From: Phaeosaccion multiseriatum
Lineage: Eukaryota; Protista; Ochrophyta, other classes
Reading direction: 5' to 3'
Length of the DNA: 64,000 bases
NCBI GenBank assembly: GCA_965112735.1
Contig: OZ218951.1
Location: forward strand, 1,984,001-2,048,000
A program made the position numbers and the translations under genes. This document shows, piece by piece, positions 1,680 to 16,789 of this stretch; the first letter of the stretch is position 1, and each line of letters opens with the position of its first letter. The notes under the pieces were generated by a model that saw only the letters and a list, made by a program, of their open reading frames with translations, was not told the origin of the DNA and did not search any database.

Positions 1680-2097
1680 TCACAAGGAGAGGATGGGCAG
1701 GCGCAGGATCTCCCGAAGCTCGTCGGCTGCCATCGCGAGCGTATCCAGCGGGATGCTCTCATTGGGGCTGTGGATGACTGCCCACGAGTCGTTGGGGCCC
1801 GCTGCAGCCGCGTAGGGCGTCGCCGTTCCATTGACCAGGTGCTTGAGCACAGAGCAGCCTGTGGGTGGGTGCGTCGTGGGTGCGTGCGTGCGTGCGTGTG
1901 CGTGCGTAGGTGTGCGTGCGTACGTGCAGGCGTTTTAACAACAGGAAGGGAGGGCAGGGCTACTGAGCGCACACATGAGCGAAGCCACAGCGCAAGGCAC
2001 GAGAGTCTCGCACCATCAGTGCGGCGCACAGCCAAGCAACAGAAAAGCCTTAGGAGCAGCAGCCAGCCACTCAGTGGTGTCGACATGACCTCTTACG

Positions 2098-2129
<32 letters not shown>

Positions 2130-2579
2130 TGAGCCTAGCTGAGTTACTTTAGTACCCTTGTCTTACCCCAATTCCTCACCTTCCGCGCCATGGAATTTTG
2201 ACATGAAACGCTCCTCCAGAGCCACTGCCCGGCCGTGTCTGTTGGCCACTCGCGTCAGGCACAGCAGCAGAGAAGCAAGCGTGACGCCGACGCACGAGCC
2301 TCTGCCATCTTCGTCCTTCGTCGCTTTCTTGAGCTTCTCCGGCGACGGCCACTTGAGTAGAAGCTGGTGAGTGAGAAGGGAGGAGAGGTCCAGCAGGCCA
2401 GGAGGCGCACAGAGTTGCCATGAAGCGAGCCACCGAGGCCGACAGCAGCCAGAGACGCAGAAGCGATTTAGAGGGGAGAAGGATGAAGGATGAAAGGTAG
2501 GGAAAACGGCGGCGGTAGGGAAACGATCGGTGGGGATACGAGGCTACCGAAGGAGGGCAATCACACATACACATATAGT

Positions 2580-2635
<56 letters not shown>

Positions 2636-3955
2636 TGCGCACGCCAAGCTGGCTAGCGGAGGCCGCCCCCGCATAGCCCGTCTCGTCCAACCAGAGCGCC
2701 ACCTGAGGGACCTTGCCTGAGGCCACCAGCTCGGGGTACACTTGCATCGCCCATGGAGACCCAATCTCTTCCTCCCCGTGGAGCAGCCATACGATGGGAG
2801 GGAGGACGTCGTCGCCGCTCGCCCCCTCCGTCTCCTTCTCGTTCTGCCCCTCCTCATCCTTCTTCTTCTCCTTCTCCTTCTTCTTCTCTTCCGCCAAGCG
2901 CCGAAGGAGGTGCTTCATCGCAACGAGGCGGAGGCACAGCGGCCCGAGGTTGTCTGCCACCCCTCGTCCGTAGAGCCGGCGCTGGCCAGGAGGAGGGGGC
3001 TGTGGCTCCTTCTCGCCTGTGCGAGGGGAGGTGGAGCCGGTATGCGAGGTGTGCAATTCCGCGTAGTACAGAGTAGCAGGGGGGGAGGTGCAGCGCGCCA
3101 GGTTTATTCGTCGGTATCGCGCAAGCGAGGGAGGGAGGACGTGCAACAGTACGCATCGAAAATTTATCATCAAGACTGCTCTGAGAGCACTGCGTAGCGA
3201 ACGACTGCCTGCCTCTGGCTGTGAGCTCGTGAGTGACTAACCTGGCTCAGTGCCTCTGCCCTTGCGGTCGTCGTGCTGATGCTGATCCACGACCTCGATG
3301 CTCCACGGGTCCGTCCTCCACAAGACTCGTTGCTTGTCGCTCACCTTCTCCACATCATAGTGGCCTGGTTGGTGGGTGGACACAACAGTCGAGTGAGCGA
3401 GATCGAGCGGCTGGGGGAAGGGGGGTTGAGTCCAGATCCAGCCAGGGGGGGTGCCGTGGGGTCAACGGCAGAGGAGGAGGAGGAGGAGGGGAGGGGAGGG
3501 GAGGCAGAGGAATGGACGAACAGAGGTCGTGTCTTCGTCCGCAAACCCCCGCCTTTCAGAAGCTCAAGTGCTGAAGAGCAATGGTGTCATCAAGTCGCAC
3601 CTACGATACCCATGGTGAGAGCGGAAGCGTTCCCTGGTCGAGTCGCGAGAAGGACATCTTCGGCTCCTTCCTTCGTGAGCCTCTCTACGGCGAAGCCGAG
3701 GTCCTCCAGCATACTGGAGATGATGTTCGTTACAGTCATCATACCAGAAGGGTTGCCTGCGACAGGCTTGGCAGCCACCTTATTGTAGCAGAGCAGGGGG
3801 GGGAGGTCTTCAGAGGAGCTCTATAGCAGCCTGCTGCCTTGTTGATGCCTAACTACTACTCCCCCCCAGCCAGTCACAGCAGGACCAAGAGCGGGGCTTA
3901 CCATCGCAGCGAGAGCGGTGGTGAACTCTTCTTCATGCTCCCATGCTCCTCCCAT
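1680..3955 (-). CDS. M20/M25/M40 family metallo-amidohydrolase, 6 exons, ~366 aa (alternative ATG at 3982)
   Basis: Exons 3955-3902, 3778-3601, 3364-3242, 3016-2634, 2363-2180, 1858-1680, all GT-AG and phase-compatible. Motifs GIVGHYDV, WRTDPW, LYGRGVADNLG, HGEEEIGS, WLDETG and IHSPNESI give the full M20 dinuclear metal-ligand set. Confidence 0.9.
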
Positions 3956-4230: not shown

Positions 4231-4699
4231 ATGTGTGGGATAGTGGTGAGTGTTGGGCTGCGCGACGGAGAGGAGCGGGTAGGACCAGCCGCTCAGAGCC
4301 TTGAGCATCGTGGGAGGGAGGCCCCACAGCTCAGGTCATTCACAGCAGCAACGGATACTGACAAGAAGGTCAAGGGGAAGGAGGTGCTCATCTCCATGGC
4401 CTTTGTACGGCTTCGCGTCTGTGGCGGCAGCGGGGATGATCAGCCCCTCCACACCATCGGGGAGGCAGCGTGTGGCGAGGGTGAGTAAGGAGGCGCCGGA
4501 AGGGGAAGAAAGAGAGAGTAAGGAGGCGCCGGAAGGGGAAGAAAGAGAAGGGGAAGAAGGGGAAGAAAAATGGCGAGAGTACGGGGATGGCAGTAAATGG
4601 CTTCCCCCCCTTCTAATCATCCCCTTCTACATCTTCCCGTCCCAAGTGAGAAGAAAACTGCGGCAGTGCCAATCGTTTGGGCTAAGGTGAAGATGAAAC

Positions 4700-4790
<91 letters not shown>

Positions 4791-6967
4791 TCTCGCTTCT
4801 CTCTGCTTCATCAGTCCATTCTATTCTCTCCCTCATCCCTTCCGCCGCCTCTTCCTCCTCATCCCTGTCCCCCCCCACGCTCCTTCCATACCCCCTTCCT
4901 TGCCACATCTTGCCAGGCCACAACTTCTTCAGCGAGCTCTACCTTTGTTTCAATGGCGAGATCTACAACGCCCAAGAGCTTCTCGACGAGGACAAACACC
5001 GTGATGCCGCTGCTACCGATCATCATGGACGTGGCGGAGAGGAAGAGGACGCCCCTCAGAATCCCAGAGGCGTGTCCGTCCCGAGCACGTCCTCCTCCGA
5101 TACGCACATGCTCTCACGCCTCCTCCTCCGCCACGGCCCTGCCGTCCTTCCGAGACTGAGGGGACAATTCGCGATTGTGGTGGTCGGGCGGGAGCGACAA
5201 AATGATGGAGAGAGTGTTTCCCTCCCCGCCTCAGCGGGGCAGTGGTCCGTACTGGCTGCGCGAGACCCCCTCGGTATTAAGCCACTACTGGTGGCTGCCG
5301 GGGGGGAGCCGGGGTCTCTAATCTTCGCAAGCGAGATTCACGCTCTTCCACACTTCAATCTGCTCGCAGATGGGCAAGTACAGGAGGTCCTAGCTGGGCA
5401 CTCCTGCTGTTTCAGACTGGGCAGGGCCATGCCACTGCCACTCTTTCACCGGTACTGCCCATCTCTGCTTTCCCAGCACTCGAGCAGCGACGACTGCTCG
5501 GCCCCCTCCCCACGATTGGCAGTATTGGACCGCGCAGCCCCTCTGGTGCTAAGCGAGCTCCGTGCCTCTGTGGCCCGGCGCATGAATAACTGCGACGGTC
5601 ATTCGGTGGGTGTGCTTCTCTCAGGAGGCATCGACTCTGCCCTCATCGCGGCCCTTGCCGCCGAGCACCTCTCGTCTTTCGCGACCTCCACTGGAGAGGT
5701 TCAAGGAGCACGTCCTGCTGGCTGTGAGACGCCGCTGAACAAGGGCATTGGCGACAAGAGGCTGTACACCTTTACCATCGCATTCGTTGAGGACGAGGAC
5801 GAGGAGGGGGAAGGGAAGGGGCGCAGCAAGGCGAGCAGCCTGCTGGACGTTGACGCGACAAAGGCAAGCCTCATCGCCAAATACATTGGCTCCATTCACC
5901 ACGAGGTAAGGCAGGTTTGAAGGCTGTGAGCGGAAAGAAAGAAGGCACCCAAGGATAGCCTCCACCCTTCGCTGCCTCGACCCACTCAGGGAGGGCTATG
6001 CACACGCATGAAAGTGGAAGCGAATCCTGTCTTGTTCACTGCTGACCGACCCGACCCACACCGCCCTTCCCCTCCTTCCCCCCTGCCTGCCCCCCCGCCC
6101 CCCCCCCTCCTCCTCGTGGCCGTGCCGCGTACCTCCTCCTCCCTCCCCTCCCGCGCCCTGCTCTGTTGCGTAGTTGCTCGTGCCCGTCAAAGATGCTCTC
6201 GCCGCTCTGCCCGAGGTGTTGCGGCACTGCGCCACGGCTGATGTAAGCATCGTGCGGGCAGCAGTGCCCCTCTTCCTCCTCTCTGGGTTCATTCGACAAA
6301 GCGCGCCCACAGTGAAGGCTGTTCTCTGTGGGGAGGGTGCAGATGAACTCTTCGCAGGCTACGCAATGTTTGAACATGTTGCGGAAGGAGGAGGAGGAGG
6401 AGGAGGAGGAGGAGGAGGAGGAGGAGGAGCAGGAGGAGCAGGAGGAGCAGGAGGAGCAGGACGGGATAATTGCCGCTGGGAGACGAGCTCAGCGGAGACA
6501 GAGAGTGGTGCTGCTGGGCATGATGATGCCATTGCTTGGGGTGACGAGGACAGCGAGGAGAAGGCGACGGCAGCCCGCGTGGCGCGTATGAGCAGGGCGC
6601 TGTTGGCCTCAATCTCCGGCACAGAGCTGCTGAGGGTGGATCGGATGACGAGCGCGCACGGCCTCGAGGCTCGCGTGCCCTACCTTGACACGGACCTCAT
6701 CGACACCGTCCTGCAGAGGATAGACCCGCGTCTGCTGCTGTCGGGGGGGCATGCGGGGGGGCATGGGCGGATGGAGAAGCTGCTGCTGCGGACTTGCGCC
6801 ACCTTCCCCTCCTTCTCCTCCTCCGATGGACGACCGCTGCTGCCCCGGAGCGTGATATGGGAGAAGAAGCGGCAGATGGCGGACGGGGTGGGAGGCAAGT
6901 GGTTGCAGCGCCTTCGTGAGCACACAGAGCGTGACAGTCCCTTCGCAGAGAGGGGAGGAGTGATACC

Positions 6968-7004
<37 letters not shown>

Positions 7005-10000
7005 TTGGTGATACAGCAGGACAGCAGTGAGCCGGGTAGCAGCCGAAGGACGACCCCGGCGACGTGTGCGGAGCAGAAATGCTTCGACCGCGTGCTGGAG
7101 GATGCGCTCAGCTCAGCTGCCCTGCGATACGCACGATCTCTTCATCGAGAGCGGAGTGCGCTGCGTCGTGAGGCGCTGAGGGACTTCATGCACAAGCGCG
7201 GCGCAGACGATGGGTCGAGGGTGCTGGCGAGCCATCAGCAGAGGAAGAGAGTGGCCAACGACCCTGACCTCAGGGAGATGCTGACGAGGGACGAGGCGCG
7301 GGCCTTTGTAAAGGACACGCTGCAGCTGTCGCTTCTTCGTTCACCATCATCACCATCATCTTGTTCATCTTCAGCAGGCAGCAGCGAACATGATGAGCAG
7401 CGGCTGCAGCGATATGATGATGATGATGATGATCAAGACCAGCAGCATCAACAGCAGCAACGGCAACTGCAGCGGCCTACTCGCAGTACGAAGGAGGAGG
7501 AGGAGGAGGAGGAGGAGGAGGAGGAGGAGGAGGAGGAGGAGGAGGAGGAGGAGGAGGGGGAGGAGCATGCACAACTCGAGCTAAGCCTGCTGTCGCTTTC
7601 GAGCATCGTCCGTGCCATGCTGCTGCGTGGCGTCACATACAACAACCTGTCTATGCTCCTGCCGGAGACCTCGGGCCGAGTGCCCACCCCTCCCGAGATG
7701 AAGCGAGATGTGTTGGAGGGGCTTGGAGGGCCTTGCGTCGTGCTCAACAGCTTCCTCGCCGCGCTATTGCACCGTCTTGGCTTCAGCGTGTACCTCGCGG
7801 CTGGCGATGTGCACCGGCCCTCATGCCATGTTGTGGTGATGGTGGAGCTGGAGGGGGGGTTGGTGTGGTGCGATGTGGGCAACTCTGCGCCGTACTTCCA
7901 GGCGGTCGTGCTCGGAGACGAGAGCATCTTTCAAGGGGGAGAGAGGAGGGAGGAGGAGGAGGAGGAGGAGGAGGAGGAGGAGGAGGAGGAGGAGGAGGAG
8001 GAGGAGGAGGAGGAGGAGGAGGAGGAGGAGGAGGTGGCGGACAACCGCCATCACCGCAGGCGCTTTCGATACAGTGTGCAGAGACAGAGGAATGACGCAA
8101 GTAGACCAAGGCCTCAAGGGAGGCAGCAGCAGCAGCAGCAGCAGTTGCTGCAGCAGCAGTATCGTGTTGTTCATCATCACGGGACAAAGGACAAGACAGC
8201 ATACACCTTCCGGCCCTTTGAGCGCATGCATTTTGCGGATTTCCGAGCCATGATTCATACCTCGCGGACAGATCCGAACTTCTCCTCCTTCCTGAATGCC
8301 GTGAAGGTGGTTTGGCTGGGGGCAGATGGCACCAAATGCGGGGTGAAGGACGGCTGCCTCTACGATGCCAACGGGCGCTTGTCTGATCACGAAGCGACTG
8401 ATGATGAGGTGATGGAGGCTGTTTGCAGTACGCACCCGCGGCTGGCCACGAATCTGAAAGTTTGCCTGGCCGTGGTCCGAGCGAAGAAGGATGCGAAGGG
8501 GGGTCACGGTGGCAAGGGAGGGAGGGAAGGTGGGGCCGGAGGAGGAGGAGGGACCGGAGAGGGAGAGGGAGAGAGCGGGGGTGCGTGTGAGGGAGAGGGT
8601 GCGGCGAGAGAGGGAGGCGGCGGAGCGAGCGATGACAAGGGAGAGGAGGGAGGGGGCCCTCCCAGAGAAAGTCGAGGTCGAGAAGATGAAGCCAACAAGA
8701 CGTCGGCAGCAGTGGGGCTTGCAGCTGGAGCCTCAGTCACCGTGGCCGTTATCATTGCGACCTGTAACAGAGACGATCTCCTTTGCAAGAGGGCAGTCAC
8801 CTCTGTGCTGCAACAGACGCGGAGGCCGTCGTGCCTGGTCATTGTCGACGACTACAACATCGCTGGTGACAGGGTCCTTCCCAGCCAGGGGGGGGTGCGT
8901 GCGTCATCGCCCTTGTCGAAGGAAGAGGCAAAGGACGGGCGGAAGAAGCTGAAAACGCGACTATTGGAGACTGTGCAGCGGGTGTGCGTGGAGGGCGGCG
9001 ATCAGAGCGAGAGGAGTGGGGCAGAGATGCGAGGAGAAGAGCATGGGGAGGAGGAGGAGGAGGAGGAGGAGGAGGAGGAGGAGGAGGAGAAGATCTGCTC
9101 TTTCCCCTTCCCAATCTTCCTCATTAGAAACGGGCGGACGAAAGGGGCGTCAGGTGCCTGGAACAGCGGCGCGTCGTGGGTTCATAGGCGCTTACTCACA
9201 GGAAAAGGCCTGGTGGAGCAGCAGCGGTTGGCGGTACAGGAGCAGCAGGAGCAGCAACAGCAGCAATTGGTGATACAGCAGCATCAGCAAGAAAAGCGGC
9301 CTCTGTCCAGTGTCTTTATTGGTATCCTCGACGACGACGACGAGTGGAAACACGAGCACTTGAGCCTCATATATCGCAAGCTTCGCCCTCCTGGAGATCA
9401 CCAGCGTCTTCCTCATGCACACGACAAAGAAGGCAAAGGCGAGCGCGAGGCAGCCGCAGGGGTGGGGGGGGGAGTGGGAGTGGGAGGTGGCGGAGGGGAG
9501 GTGGACGATGGGGGGCAGACGGTCGAAGAGCTGCTGAGTGGAGTGGCGATGGTGGTACCGGGTCTGCTGCGAGTCACGAAAGCACCCCGATCCCCTGAAG
9601 TCCCTGATGGGTGGAAGGAGTCGAAGCAAGAGCTGCCGTCAACAGTGGGGGAGCTGTGGAGAGTGGAGAACTTCCTCAAGGGGAACCCAGGCATACAGGT
9701 AAGGGAGCAGCTTAGTTTCGCACACACGTGAGACGAAGGATGGAGCGGAGGGGTCGCGTGCTAATGCTCTGACGACCGGATTGATGCCCCCCCGCTTTTC
9801 GATGGCTGCACTCGTGCCCACGCACTTGGCTTGCTTTGCTGTCGATCCTCGAGTCTTACACTCGCTAACCCTTCATCTGTCTGACTTATCATTTGTGTGT
9901 GTGTGTGCGTGTGTGTCTGAACGCTTCTCTCTTCTCTCTGGACGTCACAGGGCTCCAACCTGTTTCTCCGCCTGGACGTGTTCATGGCCGCAGGCGGCTT

Positions 10001-11281
10001 CGATGAGGCCCTCTCAAGCTGCACAGATAGGGTAAGGAATGGCAGGCAGAGTATCACACCAAGACAAAGGCAGGCAGACAAGTGGTTGCTGACGCTGCTG
10101 TGAGACAAGAGGGGGGAGGGGAGGCGAGGCAGCAGGGAACATCTCATCGACTTGCGTAAGGCGCACTTGATCTCCTCGATTTCTGATGTGTGTTTTACTC
10201 TCTCCCGCCCTTGCCCTTCCTTTGCCGCTTCACACCACGCTAGGACCTCCTCCTCCGTCTGGTATCGATGATCCCGCACGACGAGGCCGAGCGTCGCGTC
10301 CTTCTCCTGCGCGACACCTACACTGTCCGACACTTTGCCGACGATGACCGAGAGAGGATGTCCACCAAGGACAGTCCACAGAAGCTGAGAGGGCTGGATC
10401 ACTTCTACAGGAAGTGGTGCGCGCTCTTTCTGTCGTTCCCGAAAGATGCGGAAGCTTTTCGGGAGAGAGCGCAGAGGCTGTTTGGGTGGCCGCAGGAGGG
10501 AGAGGAGAGTGCTCGACAGACTGCTGTACCACCAGCAGCAGCGCCATCAGCAGCTCCATCAGCAGCTCCGTCAGCAGCTCCATCAGCAACTCCATCATCA
10601 ACTCCATCAGCAGCGGTTGCTGTTGGCGCTGCTGCTGTCGCTGGGACGGAGCAGTCGGTGCCACGGCTGCCCTCTGCGAGCTCACGGAGGCAGGTGCAGA
10701 GGCGGGTTATCCTTCATGTTGGTATCATCTCCGACTCCAACAGCAGCGCGGTGACACCCTTGCTCAAGGACTTCATTCGACACTTTTGCCAGCCTGTAAC
10801 TCGTTCTTCGGAGGAGGAGGAGGAGGAGGCGGCGGCAGCAGCAAGGGGGATGAAGGTGCAGGTGGAGGTGCACGTGTTGGAGAACGGGCCACGCGACCCA
10901 CCCAACTGCGAAGCTTCTCAGACGTTACTCGCTAAGACAGTGTGCACGGCACAGCAGCAGCAGCAGGAGGCGGAGCAAGGGCGACCGTTTCAACTGGGTG
11001 GGGACACGTGCTCTTTCCACTTCCTTAGCCTCGAAGAGCAGGAGAAGGCGTATGCGGAGGGGGCTCTCATGCTGCCTTCGAATGTTCGGCTGTCACCGGA
11101 GGAGAGGAAGAGGCAGCCCATTGCGGTGACCAGGACCATTCTACAAACGCACCTCGCTGCCTATATGAAGGAATCGGAGAGGAAAGAGGCAGCGGGCAGG
11201 AAGGGGCCAGGAAGGACACCGGCCTCGGTGCTGGCATGGGGTGAGTGAAGTGAAGTGAGCGGTCGTGCGCCATGTAACTGT

Positions 11282-11318
<37 letters not shown>

Positions 11319-11658
11319 TGTGTGTGTATGTGTGTGTATGTGTGTGTGTGTGCGTGTGTGTGTTTTTGTGTATTTGTGTGTGTGCGTGCGTGCGTGCGTA
11401 CGTGCGCGTGTGCGTGTGCATGCACGCAAGCGCAATCGCATTGTTCATGGTATGAAAGAGCAAGCGAAAGGGGGAGCAGTTTCTTGTTGTAGTCTCTCCT
11501 CTCCTCACGGCCACCCCCGTATTCTCCTGCCTTGTTGGCCCCTTTGTCGCGTGTGTGTGTGTGTGGTGCGTGCTTGGTCCAGTCTTGGACGACGACAAGC
11601 GGCTCGAAGCCCTGACGCTCTCCACTTTGCAAGTACCTACATCACCATCATCATCACT

Positions 11659-11726
<68 letters not shown>

Positions 11727-14700
11727 CATCATCCTCATCATCCTCATCAGCAGCAGCAGCAGCAACAACCTCAGCCGGAGCAGAGGCGACGGCTCACCAC
11801 CCTCCCGACCCGTGCGCCACTCCCATCCTCGCCATCACGCCAAAGCGAAGCGGTCACGCGCACCGCCTCGTTCGCCTGGCCCTCCGCCTCCATGAGGAGA
11901 GGAGCGCAGACATCGTGATCGGGGTGGACAACGGAAGCCCTCCCCTCCCCGCGGCGTATTCCGTGCGTACTCAGCTTGTGGATGTGCTCCACGAGCTCCT
12001 GCACGCGACGATGGCAGTGGACGGAAGCGAAGGCGCATGGCATCGTCGGTGTCTGTTGGAAGAGATGCATTTCGACGTGTTGGGTGTCTCTCCACAGGAG
12101 TGGCGAATGGAATCTATGACCAAGAATCCAGAATACTATCACGATTGTAAGTGACAAAACATGAGCTGAGGATGGTCACGTCGCTCTACTATGGTCACCT
12201 CGCTGTACTGCTCCCTTGGACCGCCCTTCTTTGTTTCGCTTTGCTTGCTTGTGCCCTCCTACTTATGTTCCCTCTGTCTTGCTGCCACGCTCATTTGTAA
12301 GATCCGATTTGCGTGCCTGCTTCCACCCCTCTGCTTTCCTTTCATCCCCCCCCCTCCCTCCCTTATCCTCCCTCCCTCCCTCCCTCCCTCCCTCTCTCCC
12401 TCCCTCCCTCCCTCCCTCCCTCCCTCCCTCCCTCCCTCCCTCCCTCCCTCCCTCCCTCCCTCCCTCCCTCCCTCCCTTGCCTGTATTTCTGTCTGGTTCG
12501 CAGTGGCGTCACGCCTGTGGGCTCATCTGGAGATGCCCTTCCGTTGCATCCCGACACGTGTCGAGGCGGTCGAGGAGGCGAAGCTCGGCGACGAGGACGG
12601 AGAGGACAGCAGAGACGACCGTAGACACGAGGGGCGCACCGAGGCTCTGAAGGAGATTGAGAAGCTGAGTAGGGTAGTGGGTGACATCTTGGCAGGCCTA
12701 GAGCACAGTCGACCGCTTCTCACCCTACCATCAACACCAGCAGGGAAGTGCTCGAAGGAGGAGGAGGAGGAGGAGGACAACAGAGCCGTACGCGAGGCCT
12801 TCCCTGCGTGGAGGCGAGGCGGCAACACCTTCTTCTTCTCGGCAAACTCCCTGCTGGAGGTGCCCAACACATCGCCGTGCGTCAATGGGGTATTCACTCG
12901 CCGGTCGGACTTTGTCCATTGCATGCTCCAGACGATGCTTGGGAGGACTGTGCTGATGTGTCCTGCCATGGCGGTGACGCACTCCCGCGACCGCTGGGAA
13001 GACTGCGACATGAGCACAAGGGAGGGAATCGGGGAGAAGGGGGAGGGGGAGGAAGGGGAGGGCGCGGAGGCGGAAGAGGAGGAGGGGAAGGAAGGAGAAG
13101 ATCAGCACGACGATGACGAGGCGGGGAAGGATGAGGATGAGGTGCGCCGCCTCGAGATGATGGAGCAGGTGAAGAAGGACCATCTCGGGTCGGCGGTGTA
13201 TCGCGCACTGGAGAAGGTCATTGCTCTCGCGCTGAAGGAGGAGGTTAGTGCACCCCCCAACACGAAGGAGGAGGAGGAGGAGGAGGAGGAGGAGGAGGAG
13301 GAGAAGGAGGAGGGGCCGGACAATGTCGGGGCCGTGGGTGTAGAGGCTGCCATTGCGTTCTTCTCCACCAGCAACAGCAAGAGAGTAGAGCTCTTCCGGC
13401 GCTGCTTCCGTGAATGCCTTCACAGCAGGGCGGCGGCCTTTGAGGAGTCCGTGCTGCGCATTCACGGCCTCACGCACAGCATAGACAACGTGCTCTCTCG
13501 CTGTCCGTCGTCGCCGTCCTCCTCCTCCCCCCCCTCCTCCTCCTCCCCCTCCTCCTCCTCCCCCTCCTCCTCCTCCTCCTCCTCCTCCTCATCATCATCA
13601 TCATCATCATCATCGGCATCAACATCAACATCAACATCAGCATCTGCTTGCCGTTGGTGGGTTGGCACACCGGAGGCCTCATCTCTCTCTGTGGCGATGG
13701 AGAGGATTCGTCGCCTCTTCCATCGACCGGGCCAGCACCACTACTTCCAGCTCGTCGTGGGCACCAGTGACCTCGGGGAGAGCGTGCGGGAGGAGTCGGG
13801 GGTCAGGGGCGTGGAGGACCAGGTGGTGCAATGGCTGACGAAGGAGCTGCCTGACCAGCTTCGGCAGAGGCACGATGGAAGCCGGTTGGAAGGCTTGGCA
13901 GGAGTAGACGAGCGATACAGAGACGCGCGGGCGGTGCTGGCGATGGCGTGCCCAGGCGAGTGGGAGGTGGTGGGTCGAGGGGACGAAGGAGTCACGTTTC
14001 TGCGGCAGCACCACCACCAACAGGGGAAGGTGAAGGTGAAGGTGCTCGACCGGTTCAACGAGAGAGCCACAGCGGAGCAAAGACGCTTCGTCCTGAAGGA
14101 GCTGCCCCTTATGCTCTCCACTGACAAGCCCTCACTGCATTTCCCTCACATTCTGAATGTGCTTCAGGTGCCATCGCCGAGGTTTGATGGTGGCAGTGAG
14201 GAAGGGGGCGTTGCGGTAGTGCCTGGTGGCAGTGAGGAAGGGGGCGTTGCTGCAGTGCTACCGCCGTGCATGATGATGCAGTGGCAGGAAGGGGAGACCT
14301 TCGGCGAGGTTGGAGGTCTTCTCTCCTCTCTCTCAGACAGAGAGCAGACGGAGGTGCTCCTCTCGTTTGTCGACGAGTGCGAGCAATTGGGTCTCGTGTG
14401 CAGGAACGTACATCCCAAGAACATGCTCTTCCGTGGCGGGGAGGAGGAGGAGGAGGAGGCGGAGGAGGAGGTGAAGGGGGTTGGAGGGGGGAAGGGAGAG
14501 GGAGGCGGAGGAGGGGCAGCAGTGGCAGAAGCACCAGCAGCACCAGCAGCAGGAAGAGGAGAAGGAGCAGAGATCCCAAAGAGGAGGAGGGGGAGGCTGC
14601 TATTCTTTGATGTCGGCCTCGACATGATGCCATGGAGCGAGAAGGAGGCCATCGCGATGGTGAAGAAGCTCGTGCTGTCCTTCCATCATACCATCAGCAA

Positions 14701-15311
14701 TCAATGTGGTGATAGGAAGACGGGCGACGGTGATGGTCTGACGGAACTGCTGAGTGCAGCGGTGCGCTCGCCTTGGCATGCAGGAGAGGCGAGGGGGCTG
14801 TTTGGTCTTCGTGCGCAGCTGGGAAAGCGTGGTATCGCCGTCGTCGGAAGCGAGCTGAGACAGTGGATCATGGATTGGGGCGGAGGCCGCGGAAGTGGTG
14901 CAAGCCCCGCTACTGGAGGAGGAGGAGAAGGAGGAAGCGGAAGAGGAGGAGGAGGAGGAGGAGGAGGAGGAGGAGGAGGAGGAGGAGGAGGAGGAGGAGG
15001 GGAAGAAGAAGAAGAAGAAGAAGGAGGAGGAGGAGGAGAGCGAGGAGGAGAGGGAGGAGGAAGCGGAGGGGGAGGCGGAGGAAGCGGAGGAGGAGGAGGA
15101 GGCGGAGGAAGCGGAGGCGGAGGGGGAGGCGGAGGAAGCGGAGGAGGAGGGGGAGGAGGATGCGGACGTGAAGGAGGAGTGCTCCCCTGCACCCCTCCCG
15201 CCGCCAGAAGACGCAAGAAGGTGGCGGTCATCGGAGGGGCGAGCTGCGACGATGCGACGCGCCAAATGAGTGAGCAGGTCAGTCGGTCAGTCCGTCAGAC
15301 AGAGTATGTAC

Positions 15312-15353
<42 letters not shown>

Positions 15354-15612
15354 GTTCAAGAAAAAGATGCGGACGAGAAGGTGTGGCCCGCTGAGCAGCT
15401 CGTCAGGAACGTGCATGCAGTCCACCCCCACCTTGCTTCTCTACATCAGTCACAAGCAATCCCCCTGCTGGACGCCTGCCGTAGGGTCCAGGAAGACAAG
15501 CAAACGATGGTTTCATGAGCATGTGCACTAGCCAACTCATGTCGTAGCTTGCTACCCCTCCCACCTCCCACCCCCCCGCTCTGCCTGCCTGCCTGTCTGC
15601 CTGCCTGCCTGT

Positions 15613-15654
<42 letters not shown>

Positions 15655-16789
15655 ACCTGCCTGCCTACCTGTCTGTCTGCCTGCCTGCCTGCCTATCTGG
15701 TCGGGCCTCGCTTCGCTCTGCACTGCAGCTGGGCTTTGCTTTGGCTGGTGCGGGCTTCGACGTCCAGACGGGAGGTCTCGGCGGGGTCATGAAGGGAGCG
15801 TGTCGTGGTGTGCAGCGCTGGAGGAGGGAGCACTGGCGCTCCACATTGGCCGCCTCTAACGACCCGTGCGCAGTTCCTCCACTCGCCATTGGAATCCTCC
15901 CCGGGGCGTGGAGTGGCGATGCCAACAGTTACGTAGACGTCGGTAAGTCGTGGAGGGGAGGGGAGGAGGAGGGGAGGAGGAGGGGAGGAGGAGGGGAGGG
16001 GGGGTCGCTCGGGAGGAGGGGACAGGGTCAAGAGCCAGCAGGGGAGGGGGGAACAGCACAAGTAGGGAGGGGGGCGAGGTCAAAACGGTTTGGGAGGGAG
16101 GAAGGAAGGACGGTTTGGGGGGCTACGTCTGCCCAATTCTTCGTCGCTCGATGTTTGTGTAGTTGCCGCCGCCCTTTTAGTATTGGTACGCACCCGCTAT
16201 TTTTCGCTCGCTCGCTCCTCCCCCCCCCCCCCCTCGCCCGGCTTTCCTTTGCGCTGACCAAAGGCCCGTCTGCCTCACTTCCTCCTGCCTCGGTCCCTCC
16301 TGCCTCCGCTCCTCAGTGGTGCCCACCGACATGCAGCACGTGCTGAGTGTGCTGGTGTGCCAGGACGCTTACGCCGTGGTGGCTGTAGGCGGCGGTGCAG
16401 GCACAGTTACAGAGATTGCCATCGCTTGGAACCTGAGGCGGCTCCTCCTCGCCTGGCGTGGACCCCATCCGACTCCGAGTTCGTCGTCTTCTTTGGCCTC
16501 TCCTTCGCCGCTCCAACAGAACGACGGAGAGAAGCAACAACAGCACGGTCCCTCCGCAGCAGCGGAGTCTGTGGGCCTGGTCGAGCCTCCCCCTCCCCCT
16601 CCCACGGCAGGTCAGAGGTTTGCAGGCGAGAGAGTGGACCACAGACGCCGGGTGAGGGATGCGGACGGCTCCTACGGCTGCTTGCATGCGGATGATCGAG
16701 TTTTCCCCTTTGATTGCGCCGCCGAGGCTATATCGATCATCAAAGACAAGGGCCCCTCGTACGATAAGGCTGCGAAGCGAATCGCGTGA
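4231..16789 (+). CDS. ~3,288-aa multi-enzyme fusion: Asn-synthetase-like amidotransferase + arylamine N-acetyltransferase + GT2 + second GT-A-like domain + kinase-like + SLOG/TIGR00725 domain; 9 exons
   Basis: Exons 4231-4480, 4917-5905, 6174-9698, 9951-10031, 10244-11240, 11583-12146, 12504-15277, 15729-15942, 16317-16789 (9,867 nt, all GT-AG, in frame). Motifs: MCGI, NGEIYN, RDPLGIKPL, SGGIDS, GEGADELFAGY, RVPYLD; GGPCVVLN/H/CDVG; IIATCNR, IVDD, ILDDDDEW, GGFDE..CTDRDL; WVLDDD; GRGDEG, CRNVHPKN, FDVG; VIGG, TGGLGGVM, GILPG, GGGAGTVTE. Confidence 0.88.

Follow-up and report, generated by a model that had tools for sequence, protein, structure and literature searches.

A predicted mega-enzyme gene of the alga Phaeosaccion multiseriatum fusing two conserved proteins of a putative nucleotide-sugar pathway

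Multi-domain enzymes of sugar assembly are known, and every domain considered here belongs to a known superfamily; what is new lies in the combination of domains and in the pathway connection, not in single domains. The subject is a coding region at 4231-16789 (+ strand) of a window of 64,000 nucleotides, that is, the whole stretch of DNA analysed, from Phaeosaccion multiseriatum (assembly GCA_965112735.1, contig OZ218951.1, positions 1,984,001 to 2,048,000; all positions below are those of the window unless another locus is named). The predicted protein of 3,288 amino acids consists of an amidotransferase and asparagine-synthase pair (here AsnS) and an arylamine N-acetyltransferase (NAT) domain, followed by a GT2 glycosyltransferase domain, a second domain of GT-A fold ("domain 2"), a kinase-like domain and a SLOG domain. 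The reading favored here, with a probability of roughly 0.6, is that this is one real gene that fuses two conserved proteins of a single pathway, and that its product is a soluble nucleotide-sugar enzyme directed to an amidated, N-acylated glycoside or short glycan. The association of the modules is conserved, and the chemistry attached to it is a proposal. The parts of the protein, in order, are:

4231-5347, + strand, class II (N-terminal Cys) glutamine amidotransferase domain, holding intron 1
5549-6932, + strand, asparagine-synthase (ATP pyrophosphatase) domain, holding intron 2
7593-8423, + strand, NAT-family domain, interrupted by a poly-Glu run
8484-8735, + strand, Gly/Glu-rich low-complexity linker (~80 residues) in a continuous open frame, where the AsnS-NAT half meets the GT2-to-SLOG half
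8736-10487, + strand, GT2 glycosyltransferase domain, holding introns 3 and 4
10694-13100, + strand, domain 2 (GT-A fold), holding introns 5 and 6
13100-13895, + strand, helical region between domain 2 and the kinase-like domain
13895-14872, + strand, protein-kinase-like domain
14876-15190, + strand, Gly-rich linker of ~100 amino acids
15218-16460, + strand, SLOG cluster-4 / TIGR00725-type domain, holding introns 7 and 8

Four described systems come closest to parts of this protein. First, in the Wbp/Vim pathway an AsnB-like enzyme makes uronamide sugars and a de-acetylation and re-acylation step is also present, so that in Porphyromonas WbpS and these steps yield N-seryl or N-acetyl glucuronamide (PMC7468200). 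The shared logic would combine a UDP-sugar dehydrogenase with the removal and replacement of an acyl group and with AsnB-like amidation of a uronic carboxylate; the acyltransferase and deacylase of that pathway, however, belong to other families, and the AsnS part of the window's protein scores lower with the WbpS-type model TIGR03108 than with AsnB models. Second, WbdD, the chain terminator of the Escherichia coli O9a antigen, combines a methyltransferase, a eukaryotic-type kinase and a coiled coil (PMC3482155). The likeness is that an enzyme of sugar assembly has a kinase fold of the eukaryotic type next to helical spacers; the window's protein differs in lacking the methyltransferase, in carrying Asn for the catalytic Asp of the kinase and in showing no sequence-level match. 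The modular layout of such ABC-transporter-dependent glycan assembly enzymes varies (PMC11231755). Third, GT75 enzymes (MtdL and the plant RGP/UAM proteins) act as Mn-dependent NDP-pyranose mutases; they carry the metal motif DDD, and their catalytic, autoglycosylated Arg has Asp and His partners (PMC9937993). Domain 2 carries a DDD motif and its homologue model fits MtdL, with no match at the sequence level. Fourth, LOG-type enzymes with a PGGxGTxxE motif cleave nucleotides, LOG-type nucleosidases share the GGxGTxxE motif, and the blasticidin and gougerotin pathways begin with the CMP nucleosidases BlsM and GouE (PMC12500856), a cytosylglucuronic-acid core being common to antibiotics of these two types (PMC5572114). 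None of the proteins met in the searches has the whole architecture, and literature searches returned no paper on this combination of domains, in line with the initial annotation, to which no described protein of this architecture was known.

Gene model and the join between the two halves

Stop-to-stop frames of the + strand at 3.8-17.5 kb were listed, and all frame-keeping GT..AG pairs between consecutive frames were searched. This search reproduced exactly the model of the initial annotation, with nine exons, eight GT-AG introns and ~3,288 amino acids:

4231-4480, + strand, exon 1
4481-4916, + strand, intron 1
4917-5905, + strand, exon 2
5906-6173, + strand, intron 2
6174-9698, + strand, exon 3
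9699-9950, + strand, intron 3
9951-10031, + strand, exon 4
10032-10243, + strand, intron 4
10244-11240, + strand, exon 5
11241-11582, + strand, intron 5
11583-12146, + strand, exon 6
12147-12503, + strand, intron 6
12504-15277, + strand, exon 7
15278-15728, + strand, intron 7
15729-15942, + strand, exon 8
15943-16316, + strand, intron 8
16317-16789, + strand, exon 9

The joined exons comprise 9,867 nt (stop included) and contain a lone stop, at the end. The introns range from 212 to 451 nt, every donor reads GTRAGK or GTCAGT, and the shortest piece of coding sequence, exon 4, has 81 nt. For introns 2-8, alignment with intron-free homologues bridges each junction without a gap over the 60 residues around it; support for intron 1 is weaker, the homologue alignment having a 9-residue gap nearby. 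The five motifs that had been described as completed only across junctions (NPGIQ/GSNLF, CTDR/DLLLRL, AW/VLDDD, YYHD/LASR and MSEQ/LGFAL; slashes mark exon junctions) are all there and are each bridged gap-free. For example, GNPGIQ/GSNLF...SCTDR/DLLLRL aligns with GNPHIQGSNVV...SCTDRDLLIRF of the homologue P0154, AW/VLDDDKRL with AWVLDDDKRL of a protein from Gonium, and YVDV/VVPT with YCDVVLPT of a further homologue.

A misassembly was considered and rejected. Genomic unitigs of four runs (X1-X4), compared over 9690-15689, agree with the assembly letter for letter except for a single-base deletion at 10111 in one X4 contig. The only breaks in the unitigs of the public runs are at simple repeats, and the "joints" listed have sides of ~20 letters at such repeats. 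G+C content is ~60% throughout the window. The introns of the gene are rich in simple repeats, including (CT)n, (GT)n, A/T-poor triplet runs and a CTGCCTGC-type repeat, and the places within introns where unitigs break are:

4690-4800, simple repeat
11280-11350, simple repeat
11640-11760, simple repeat
12330-12480, simple repeat
15300-15350, simple repeat
15560-15700, simple repeat

The fusion had been held to be more than a splicing guess, and this stands: the AsnS-NAT-GT2 boundaries lie in one exon, and the part from GT2 to SLOG is colinear with single proteins elsewhere. The NAT-GT2 join falls inside an open exon of 1,175 codons, with no in-frame stop throughout 6174-9728 and no in-frame ATG between the end of NAT (~8423) and the first strand of GT2, which starts at ~8736. 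When the N-terminus of P0154 was compared by eye with the model sequence, its Met1 fell just past the linker; in BLAST, the aligned stretch begins further inside the protein for P0154 and at model residue 1273 for P0156 and the bacterial homologues. Low-complexity sequence (Glu-, Gly-, Ser- or Gln-rich) makes up 795 of the 3,288 residues, about a quarter of the protein, and is partly inserted within domains.

The alternative to be weighed here is a pair of tandem genes, AsnS-NAT and GT2-to-SLOG, in which case 8484-8735 would be a chance stop-free spacer, or would be spliced out or ended by polyadenylation. Several points count for it and against a single product. The halves are separate genes in three other loci (L001, L003 and L008). 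The linker is purine-rich and of low complexity, its codon-position composition is unlike that of the domain-coding parts, and a second frame is also open across it, so that composition alone is no proof of translation. RNA runs were sought in public run searches and only genomic DNA was found, none of it recorded as RNA; run contigs pass through introns 3 and 4 at even depth, and the runs are therefore genomic. The single product of 3,288 amino acids is thus a prediction from the genomic frame and from homology. Two tandem genes are nevertheless hard to reconcile with a frame that is free of stops from 6174 to 9728 and with the missing ATG between NAT and GT2. Moreover, inserts like the linker sit within the NAT, GT2 and kinase-like domains, where they interrupt the fold and must be translated, and an AsnS-NAT-GT2-domain 2 protein exists as a single open reading frame (ORF), in the same order, in locus L004. 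Two genes are accordingly regarded as a rather improbable reading, and the one-gene reading is kept.

Domains of the AsnS-NAT and GT2-to-SLOG halves

The AsnB-like, NAT, GT2 and SLOG assignments of the initial annotation are matched by Pfam or NCBIfam models. The translation opens with MCGI at 4231, which places the catalytic Cys right after Met, and the first domain matches GATase_7 (7.7e-15) and GATase_6 (1.7e-11). The Asn_synthase model (PF00733) matches exon 2 at 3.7e-12 (profile positions 3-77) and exon 3 at 2.3e-29 (positions 78-306), i.e., at consecutive positions, and the PP-loop reads SGGIDS. Asparagine synthase B is the top NCBIfam model for the AsnS part; on exon pieces scanned apart, the AsnB models gave 68 and 123 bits against an equivalog cut-off of 499. 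The WbpS-type model TIGR03108 (eps_aminotran_1) scored 1.9e-10 and 3.3e-06, compared to 3.3e-22 and 1.8e-35 for AsnB models. The NAT part matches Acetyltransf_2 (PF00797) at 9.7e-09, with 35.8 bits against a cut-off of 22.8, over profile positions 4-226 of 240. The Cys-His-Asp triad that had been placed at 7734, 7827 and 7872 (Cys TGC 7734-7736, His CAT 7827-7829, Asp GAT 7872-7874) is confirmed by its alignment with GGxC, H and DVG of the NAT-family enzyme GdmF, whose structure is solved.

In the second half, Glycos_transf_2 (PF00535) matches the GT2 domain with 27.5 bits against a cut-off of 23.3 when the whole exon-3 ORF is scanned; the domain has VIVDD and ILDDDD motifs and is colinear with the GT2 of P0154, P0155, P0156 and the bacterial homologues. 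Domain 2, which was delimited by family alignment and by the predicted structure of a homologue, is marked by the family motifs ISDSNS, LENGP, VLDDDK, GSPPLP..RTQL, YYHD, HLEMPF, RGGNT and RRSD. Neither domain 2 nor the kinase-like domain of the window's protein has a Pfam match; for domain 2, Pfam (including PF03214) gave nothing at E<=1 among 15 family members, and its profile found nothing at E<=10 among the sequences of the Protein Data Bank (PDB). An AlphaFold2 model was available for residues 330-1110 of the homologue P0154, not for the window's own protein (mean pLDDT 79, pTM 0.80). When this model was searched with Foldseek, its first 380 residues matched GT-A glycosyltransferases and its last 210 matched the kinases CaMKII, ROCK and CK2, with long helices between. 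VIA-align placed MtdL of GT75 (7xpt) first, at Z 18.2 over 303 residues with a root-mean-square deviation of 3.1, the next family reaching Z 15.0. Foldseek against Swiss-Prot models, by contrast, listed a plant UDP-arabinopyranose mutase at rank 28 only, so that GT75 is not first by Foldseek alone. Language-model (Atlas) features of domain 2 point to DUF6271, RGP and STELLO clusters. In this domain DDD is invariant and is followed by conserved R, D, RxxD and H residues in the order seen in GT75, a comparison of order only and not a superposition of residues. The GT-A-like fold proposed in the initial annotation is thus supported by the P0154 model and the family alignment, and the transferase role is less certain: modeled on its homologue, domain 2 is nearest to the GT75 NDP-sugar mutases and may itself be a mutase.

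The helical region that follows was placed from the long helices at residues 381-564 of the P0154 model and from colinear blastp matches, and it carries Glu- and Ser-rich inserts. The kinase-like domain is recognized by a GRGDEGV loop, KVKV, a CRNVHPKN catalytic loop and FDVG. A family profile (alignment A2; hmmsearch) matched solved protein kinases at E values of 5e-6 to 1e-3 over the N-lobe and the catalytic loop, the top matches being CDKL5 (5.1e-06), then TTK, CaMKII and ROCK2. Alignments A2 and A3 were built from fetched homologue loci and the window only; the window rows of A2 retain every family motif in domain 2 and in the kinase-like domain. Across the family, the Gly loop, the Lys and the DxG are conserved. 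In the CRNVHPKN loop (14390-14420), Asn occupies the position of the catalytic Asp in the window and in all aligned eukaryotic and bacterial relatives, and by this alignment the missing Asp is a family trait, not decay of this gene. The kinase fold that had been named is therefore upheld by the profile and by the P0154 model, and the phosphorylation attached to it is doubtful.

The Gly-rich linker at 14876-15190 was delimited from the low-complexity map, blastp and the domain maps of relatives, and it stands in place of the methyltransferase found in bacterial homologues and Gonium and of the further GT2 of relatives; Pfam gave no match for a methyltransferase in the window's protein. The SLOG domain matches Pfam LDcluster4 (PF18306) at 3.4e-06 and carries a GGGAGTVTE motif; on exon 9 alone the match reaches 27.2 bits against a cut-off of 26.3, and homologues score 82-102 bits. 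Pieces of TIGR00725 appear in the right profile order, in exon 8 (profile 26-51) and exon 9 (profile 78-123). Solved relatives of this domain are an uncharacterized Thermotoga protein, a molybdenum-cofactor carrier and LOG phosphoribohydrolases. Exons 5 and 7 gave only low-complexity matches when compared with solved-structure sequences; a word-index search with exon 7 came back empty after low-complexity words had filled the candidate list, and is hence no evidence of absence. No transmembrane segment was found in the whole protein, and a membrane-embedded synthase of the cellulose or hyaluronan type was rejected because no hydrophobic stretch fits a membrane helix.

The same modules in other eukaryotes and in prokaryotes

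An exhaustive HMMER search of 1.84 billion cluster representatives with exon 3 gave as best matches (18 at E<=1e-30) proteins of 640-1,300 amino acids that cover both AsnS and NAT, and none of the size of the window's gene. Pfam identified GATase, Asn_synthase and Acetyltransf_2 in those scanned. Those with names are transcriptome proteins of the amoebozoans Dracoamoeba and Vermistella and of the diatom Corethron hystrix (UniRef A0A7S1BSN8), which shows that AsnS-NAT is conserved and expressed in eukaryotes as a protein by itself. These uncharacterized protist fusions share with the window the order GATase, Asn synthase, NAT, 42-47% identity in matched stretches and a conserved NAT triad region; unlike the window's protein, which runs on for 2,100 amino acids, they stop after NAT (~730-1,030 amino acids). 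In one of the matches, P0011, AsnS-NAT is followed on the same chain by an M20 peptidase segment and a UDP-glucose/GDP-mannose dehydrogenase.

The second half likewise exists by itself. P0154 (2,085 amino acids), P0155 (2,007) and the hypothetical protein GPECTOR_54g189 of the green alga Gonium pectorale (3,317) are colinear with model residues 1273-3135, P0154 with residues 1459-3135, and the Gonium protein begins with the same GT2 and ends with SLOG. All three have the same order of GT2, domain 2, helical region, kinase-like domain and SLOG, and the same motifs across the window's exon junctions. They differ from the window's protein in lacking AsnS-NAT and in keeping a further GT2 before SLOG; the Gonium protein also has a methyltransferase, and the window's protein has neither of these two additions.

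What ties the halves together is their neighborhood. On a 542-kb contig (L003), an M20 gene lies head-to-head with AsnS-NAT and is followed, on the opposite strand, by the 2,085-amino-acid gene with GT2 and LDcluster4. The same three genes (M20, AsnS-NAT and GT2-to-SLOG) occur in L008 in another arrangement, and in L001 an AsnS-NAT-M20-UGDH fusion (UGDH, a UDP-sugar dehydrogenase) adjoins an epimerase-GT2-...-GT2-SLOG gene. A short GT..AG intron lies within these genes in L003 and L001, and the AsnS gene of L008 is interrupted at the matching position; these are therefore eukaryotic loci. The GT part of the window's protein is most similar to the L001 copy, at 35% identity. L001 also represents a second pair of mega-fusions:

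L001, 8441-12355, AsnS-NAT-M20-UGDH
L001, 333-6661, epimerase-GT2-domain 2-kinase-like-GT2-SLOG (two ORFs, short intron)

The third member of the set stands beside the gene in the window too, where tblastn with the M20 proteins of L003, L008 and P0011 revealed a homologue of these, head-to-head with the mega-enzyme gene:

1698-3778, - strand, M20-type amidohydrolase gene (pieces 3778-3620, 2975-2673 and 1856-1698)

Its 5' end lies ~400-450 nt from the ATG at 4231, and the two genes may share a bidirectional promoter. By homology and gene order, the window's gene is the AsnS-NAT protein and the GT2-to-SLOG protein of a conserved three-gene cluster in one reading frame, and neither half is novel alone, both being conserved proteins that are neighbors in other eukaryotes.

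The initial annotation suggested a horizontally acquired bacterial operon, and prokaryotic operons do hold the same gene set in large part. A word-index search with GT2 and domain 2 of P0154 returned ~60 proteins of 1,200-1,980 amino acids, the labeled ones being glycosyltransferases of Myxococcota, Deltaproteobacteria and Phycisphaerae. These bacterial homologues align with P0154 nearly end to end. In GT2, domain 2 and the kinase-like domain, they share with the window's protein ~25-31% identity. The chains run from GT2 through domain 2, a kinase-like domain, a methyltransferase and an unassigned stretch to a second GT2, in some with a histidine phosphatase or an N-terminal UGDH in addition. 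They differ from the window's protein in that methyltransferase and second GT2 are present, AsnS-NAT is absent and SLOG is a separate partner gene. Such an LDcluster4 gene follows the big glycosyltransferase (GT) gene in four of five bacterial loci, adjacent in L005, L007 and L009 (two of these with shared stop and start) and one gene further in L010; L006, the exception, has none:

L005, 15286-16596, SLOG gene
L007, 11804-12406, SLOG gene
L009, 12858-13382, SLOG gene
L010, 16751-17314, SLOG gene

A UDP-sugar dehydrogenase is fused or adjacent in L001, L004, L009 and L010, and an NAD-dependent epimerase/dehydratase in L001, L004, L005 and L012; these partners point to nucleotide sugars and uronic acids.

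The other prokaryotic group carries the first half. On a bacterial-looking contig (L004), P0196 is an AsnS-NAT-GT2-domain 2 fusion of 1,454 amino acids in an operon of overlapping genes, followed by a GTP cyclohydrolase II-NADAR fusion, a polysaccharide deacetylase, a carbamoyltransferase, UGDH and an epimerase. A scan of species genomes with P0196 found a Flavobacteriales copy and, in Marine Group II archaea, five consecutive separate genes for GT2-domain 2, GTP cyclohydrolase II-NADAR, AsnS, NAT and an epimerase. Four modules are thus shared with the window, in L004 in the same order on one chain; unlike the window's protein, these operons have no kinase-like or SLOG part and have GTP cyclohydrolase II-NADAR instead. 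This alternation recurs: operons with AsnS and NAT but no SLOG carry the GTP cyclohydrolase II-NADAR fusion, and full-length GT loci carry SLOG and no such fusion. The Pfam-checked copies are listed here, and L013 and L014 have ORFs of matching sizes.

L004, 4439-5482, GTP cyclohydrolase II-NADAR
L012, 12255-13349, GTP cyclohydrolase II-NADAR

Judging from about a dozen loci, SLOG and GTP cyclohydrolase II-NADAR may represent a non-homologous replacement of a base-releasing step.

A tree of GT2 and domain 2 groups the window with the eukaryotic copies (88/89) and places P0196 and the archaeal group in a separate clade (96/99). It has long branches and weak support, and suggests separate origins for the two AsnS-NAT-GT joins. 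Descent of the window's fusion from a prokaryotic one of the L004 type was considered and is not favored by this placement, within the same weak support. The operon idea of the initial annotation therefore holds for the existence of such operons, in L004 and Marine Group II, descent from the L004 type being less favored.

Bacterial genes for the GT protein, with or without SLOG, often lie beside defense or mobile genes:

L006, 3678-9499, BrxC/PglY and RES
L007, 1006-5258, restriction-type helicase and NERD
L009, 3376-6616, PemK and a DprA-like SLOG
L010, 514-3856, integrase and recombinase
L004, 9615-12382, AbiH and NYN

SLOG domains are tied to nucleotide-centered conflict systems, and with these five neighborhoods a conflict or defense system that acts on nucleotides or nucleic acids, for example by DNA-base glycosylation or nucleotide depletion, has to be considered, the algal gene then being a domesticated or transferred copy. 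PADLOC-DB 2.0, however, gave weak domain-level matches only (mad2 for the methyltransferase part, PD-T4-6 for the kinase part) and none for the SLOG partners. Further, the partner genes encode enzymes of sugar nucleotides (UGDH, epimerase), a stable metabolic set of three genes is found in the eukaryotic loci, and variable surface-glycan loci also occur in such islands. A defense role is for these reasons judged very unlikely, the weaker third behind the two metabolic products weighed below.

Proposed function and candidate products

As a soluble enzyme of a sugar pathway, the protein would work in the cytosol on nucleotide-activated sugars. Its AsnS part would adenylate and amidate a uronic-acid carboxylate, by analogy with WbpS and uronamide sugars. 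The M20 enzyme would free an amino group, which the NAT part would re-acylate via its Cys-His-Asp triad. The GT75-like domain would supply or handle the sugar donor, possibly by conversion of a pyranose to a furanose, and the GT2 domain would transfer the sugar. The SLOG domain would bind or cleave a nucleotide, possibly releasing a base as acceptor, and the kinase-like domain would bind ATP or the growing product.

Several observations weigh against this reading of the gene and its chemistry. All activities of the members, and the product, are deduced from sequence. Neither a UDP-sugar dehydrogenase nor an epimerase lies within the 64-kb window. No other eukaryote in these searches has the exact NAT-GT2 join, and close relatives of the NAT-GT2 stretch were absent from the results of a metagenome scan in which poly-Glu made up two of the six patterns. 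The AsnS part is, on the model scores given above, nearer to housekeeping AsnB than to the WbpS type. Phosphorylation is doubtful because Asn replaces the catalytic Asp family-wide. Finally, with neither the methyltransferase nor the last GT2 of its relatives, the window's protein could be a reduced version. Of the earlier interpretation as a whole, the fusion and the operon idea have survived; phosphorylation and a transferase role for domain 2 have fared less well, and the single transcript is still a prediction.

Within the favored reading, two kinds of product were compared. The first, a more specific form of it, is a nucleobase glycoside, that is, a nucleoside-like hexuronamide small molecule rather than a glycan. 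SLOG would free the base, GT2 would couple it to a UDP-uronic acid, AsnS would convert the carboxylate to a carboxamide and NAT would acylate an amine, a logic analogous to that of the cytosylglucuronic-acid antibiotics blasticidin S and gougerotin. Consistent with it, nine loci have SLOG fused to the big GT gene or next to it, and the SLOG-less operons L004 and L012 carry GTP cyclohydrolase II-NADAR, which could also free a base. Solved SLOG relatives include LOG phosphoribohydrolases, NAT enzymes prefer arylamines, the protein is soluble, and the eukaryotic loci showed neither an initiating transferase for a lipid carrier nor a flippase. Yet SLOG cluster 4 is not the family of BlsM and GouE, and its nearest solved relatives also include the molybdenum-cofactor carrier. 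The two to three GT-A domains, the helical spacer and the kinase-like domain, together with the methyltransferase of the relatives, look more like a glycan builder, and the alternation of SLOG with NADAR comes from about a dozen loci only. A nucleobase glycoside is therefore entertained tentatively. A broader form, an uncharacterized pathway across the domains of life in which SLOG or GTP cyclohydrolase II-NADAR would free a nucleobase and the GT2/GT75-like pair would add a uronic-acid-derived sugar that is then amidated and N-acylated, is considered unlikely at present.

The second product is a polymer or a protein-linked glycan made in the style of ABC-transporter-dependent O-antigens, with GT modules, a helical ruler and a WbdD-like kinase/methyltransferase cap at the non-reducing end; AsnS, NAT and M20 would turn one of the sugars into an N-acyl uronamide, on the model of the Wbp/Vim pathway. 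In the bacterial homologues a long helical region does precede the kinase-like domain and a methyltransferase comes after it, and WbdD resembles ROCK (PMC3482155), which is also among the fold matches obtained here. Moreover, L005 has ABC-2 transporter genes nearby, and L004 a polysaccharide deacetylase and a carbamoyltransferase. Against a capped glycan stand the missing methyltransferase and the Asn at the catalytic Asp in the window's protein, and WbdD itself was not among the structural matches listed. No initiating phosphoglycosyl transferase, polymerase or exporter is conserved beside the genes. A SLOG domain is not known to have a role in glycan assembly. The polymer is thus a possibility that falls well short of being probable, and the small-molecule and polymer versions are about equally likely.

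For the favored reading, one gene for two proteins of one pathway, the fusion serves as a Rosetta stone that links AsnS-NAT, the M20 amidohydrolase and the giant GT2-GT75-like-kinase-like-SLOG protein in one pathway. Parts of this set recur in the alga, in Gonium and other protists, in Myxococcota and Planctomycetota and in marine archaea, i.e., in all three domains of life, and the members are unstudied. The eukaryotic loci document a conserved metabolic gene cluster in protists, where such clusters are uncommon. Testable roles are offered for SLOG cluster 4 and for a kinase-like domain whose catalytic Asp is replaced by Asn. Should a nucleobase glycoside or a new amidated sugar polymer turn out to be the product, this would be a new class of algal metabolite or of cell-surface chemistry; if the nucleobase route holds, this would be the first pathway to a nucleoside-antibiotic-like or signaling glycoside from a conserved cluster, here a single gene, in algae or protists.

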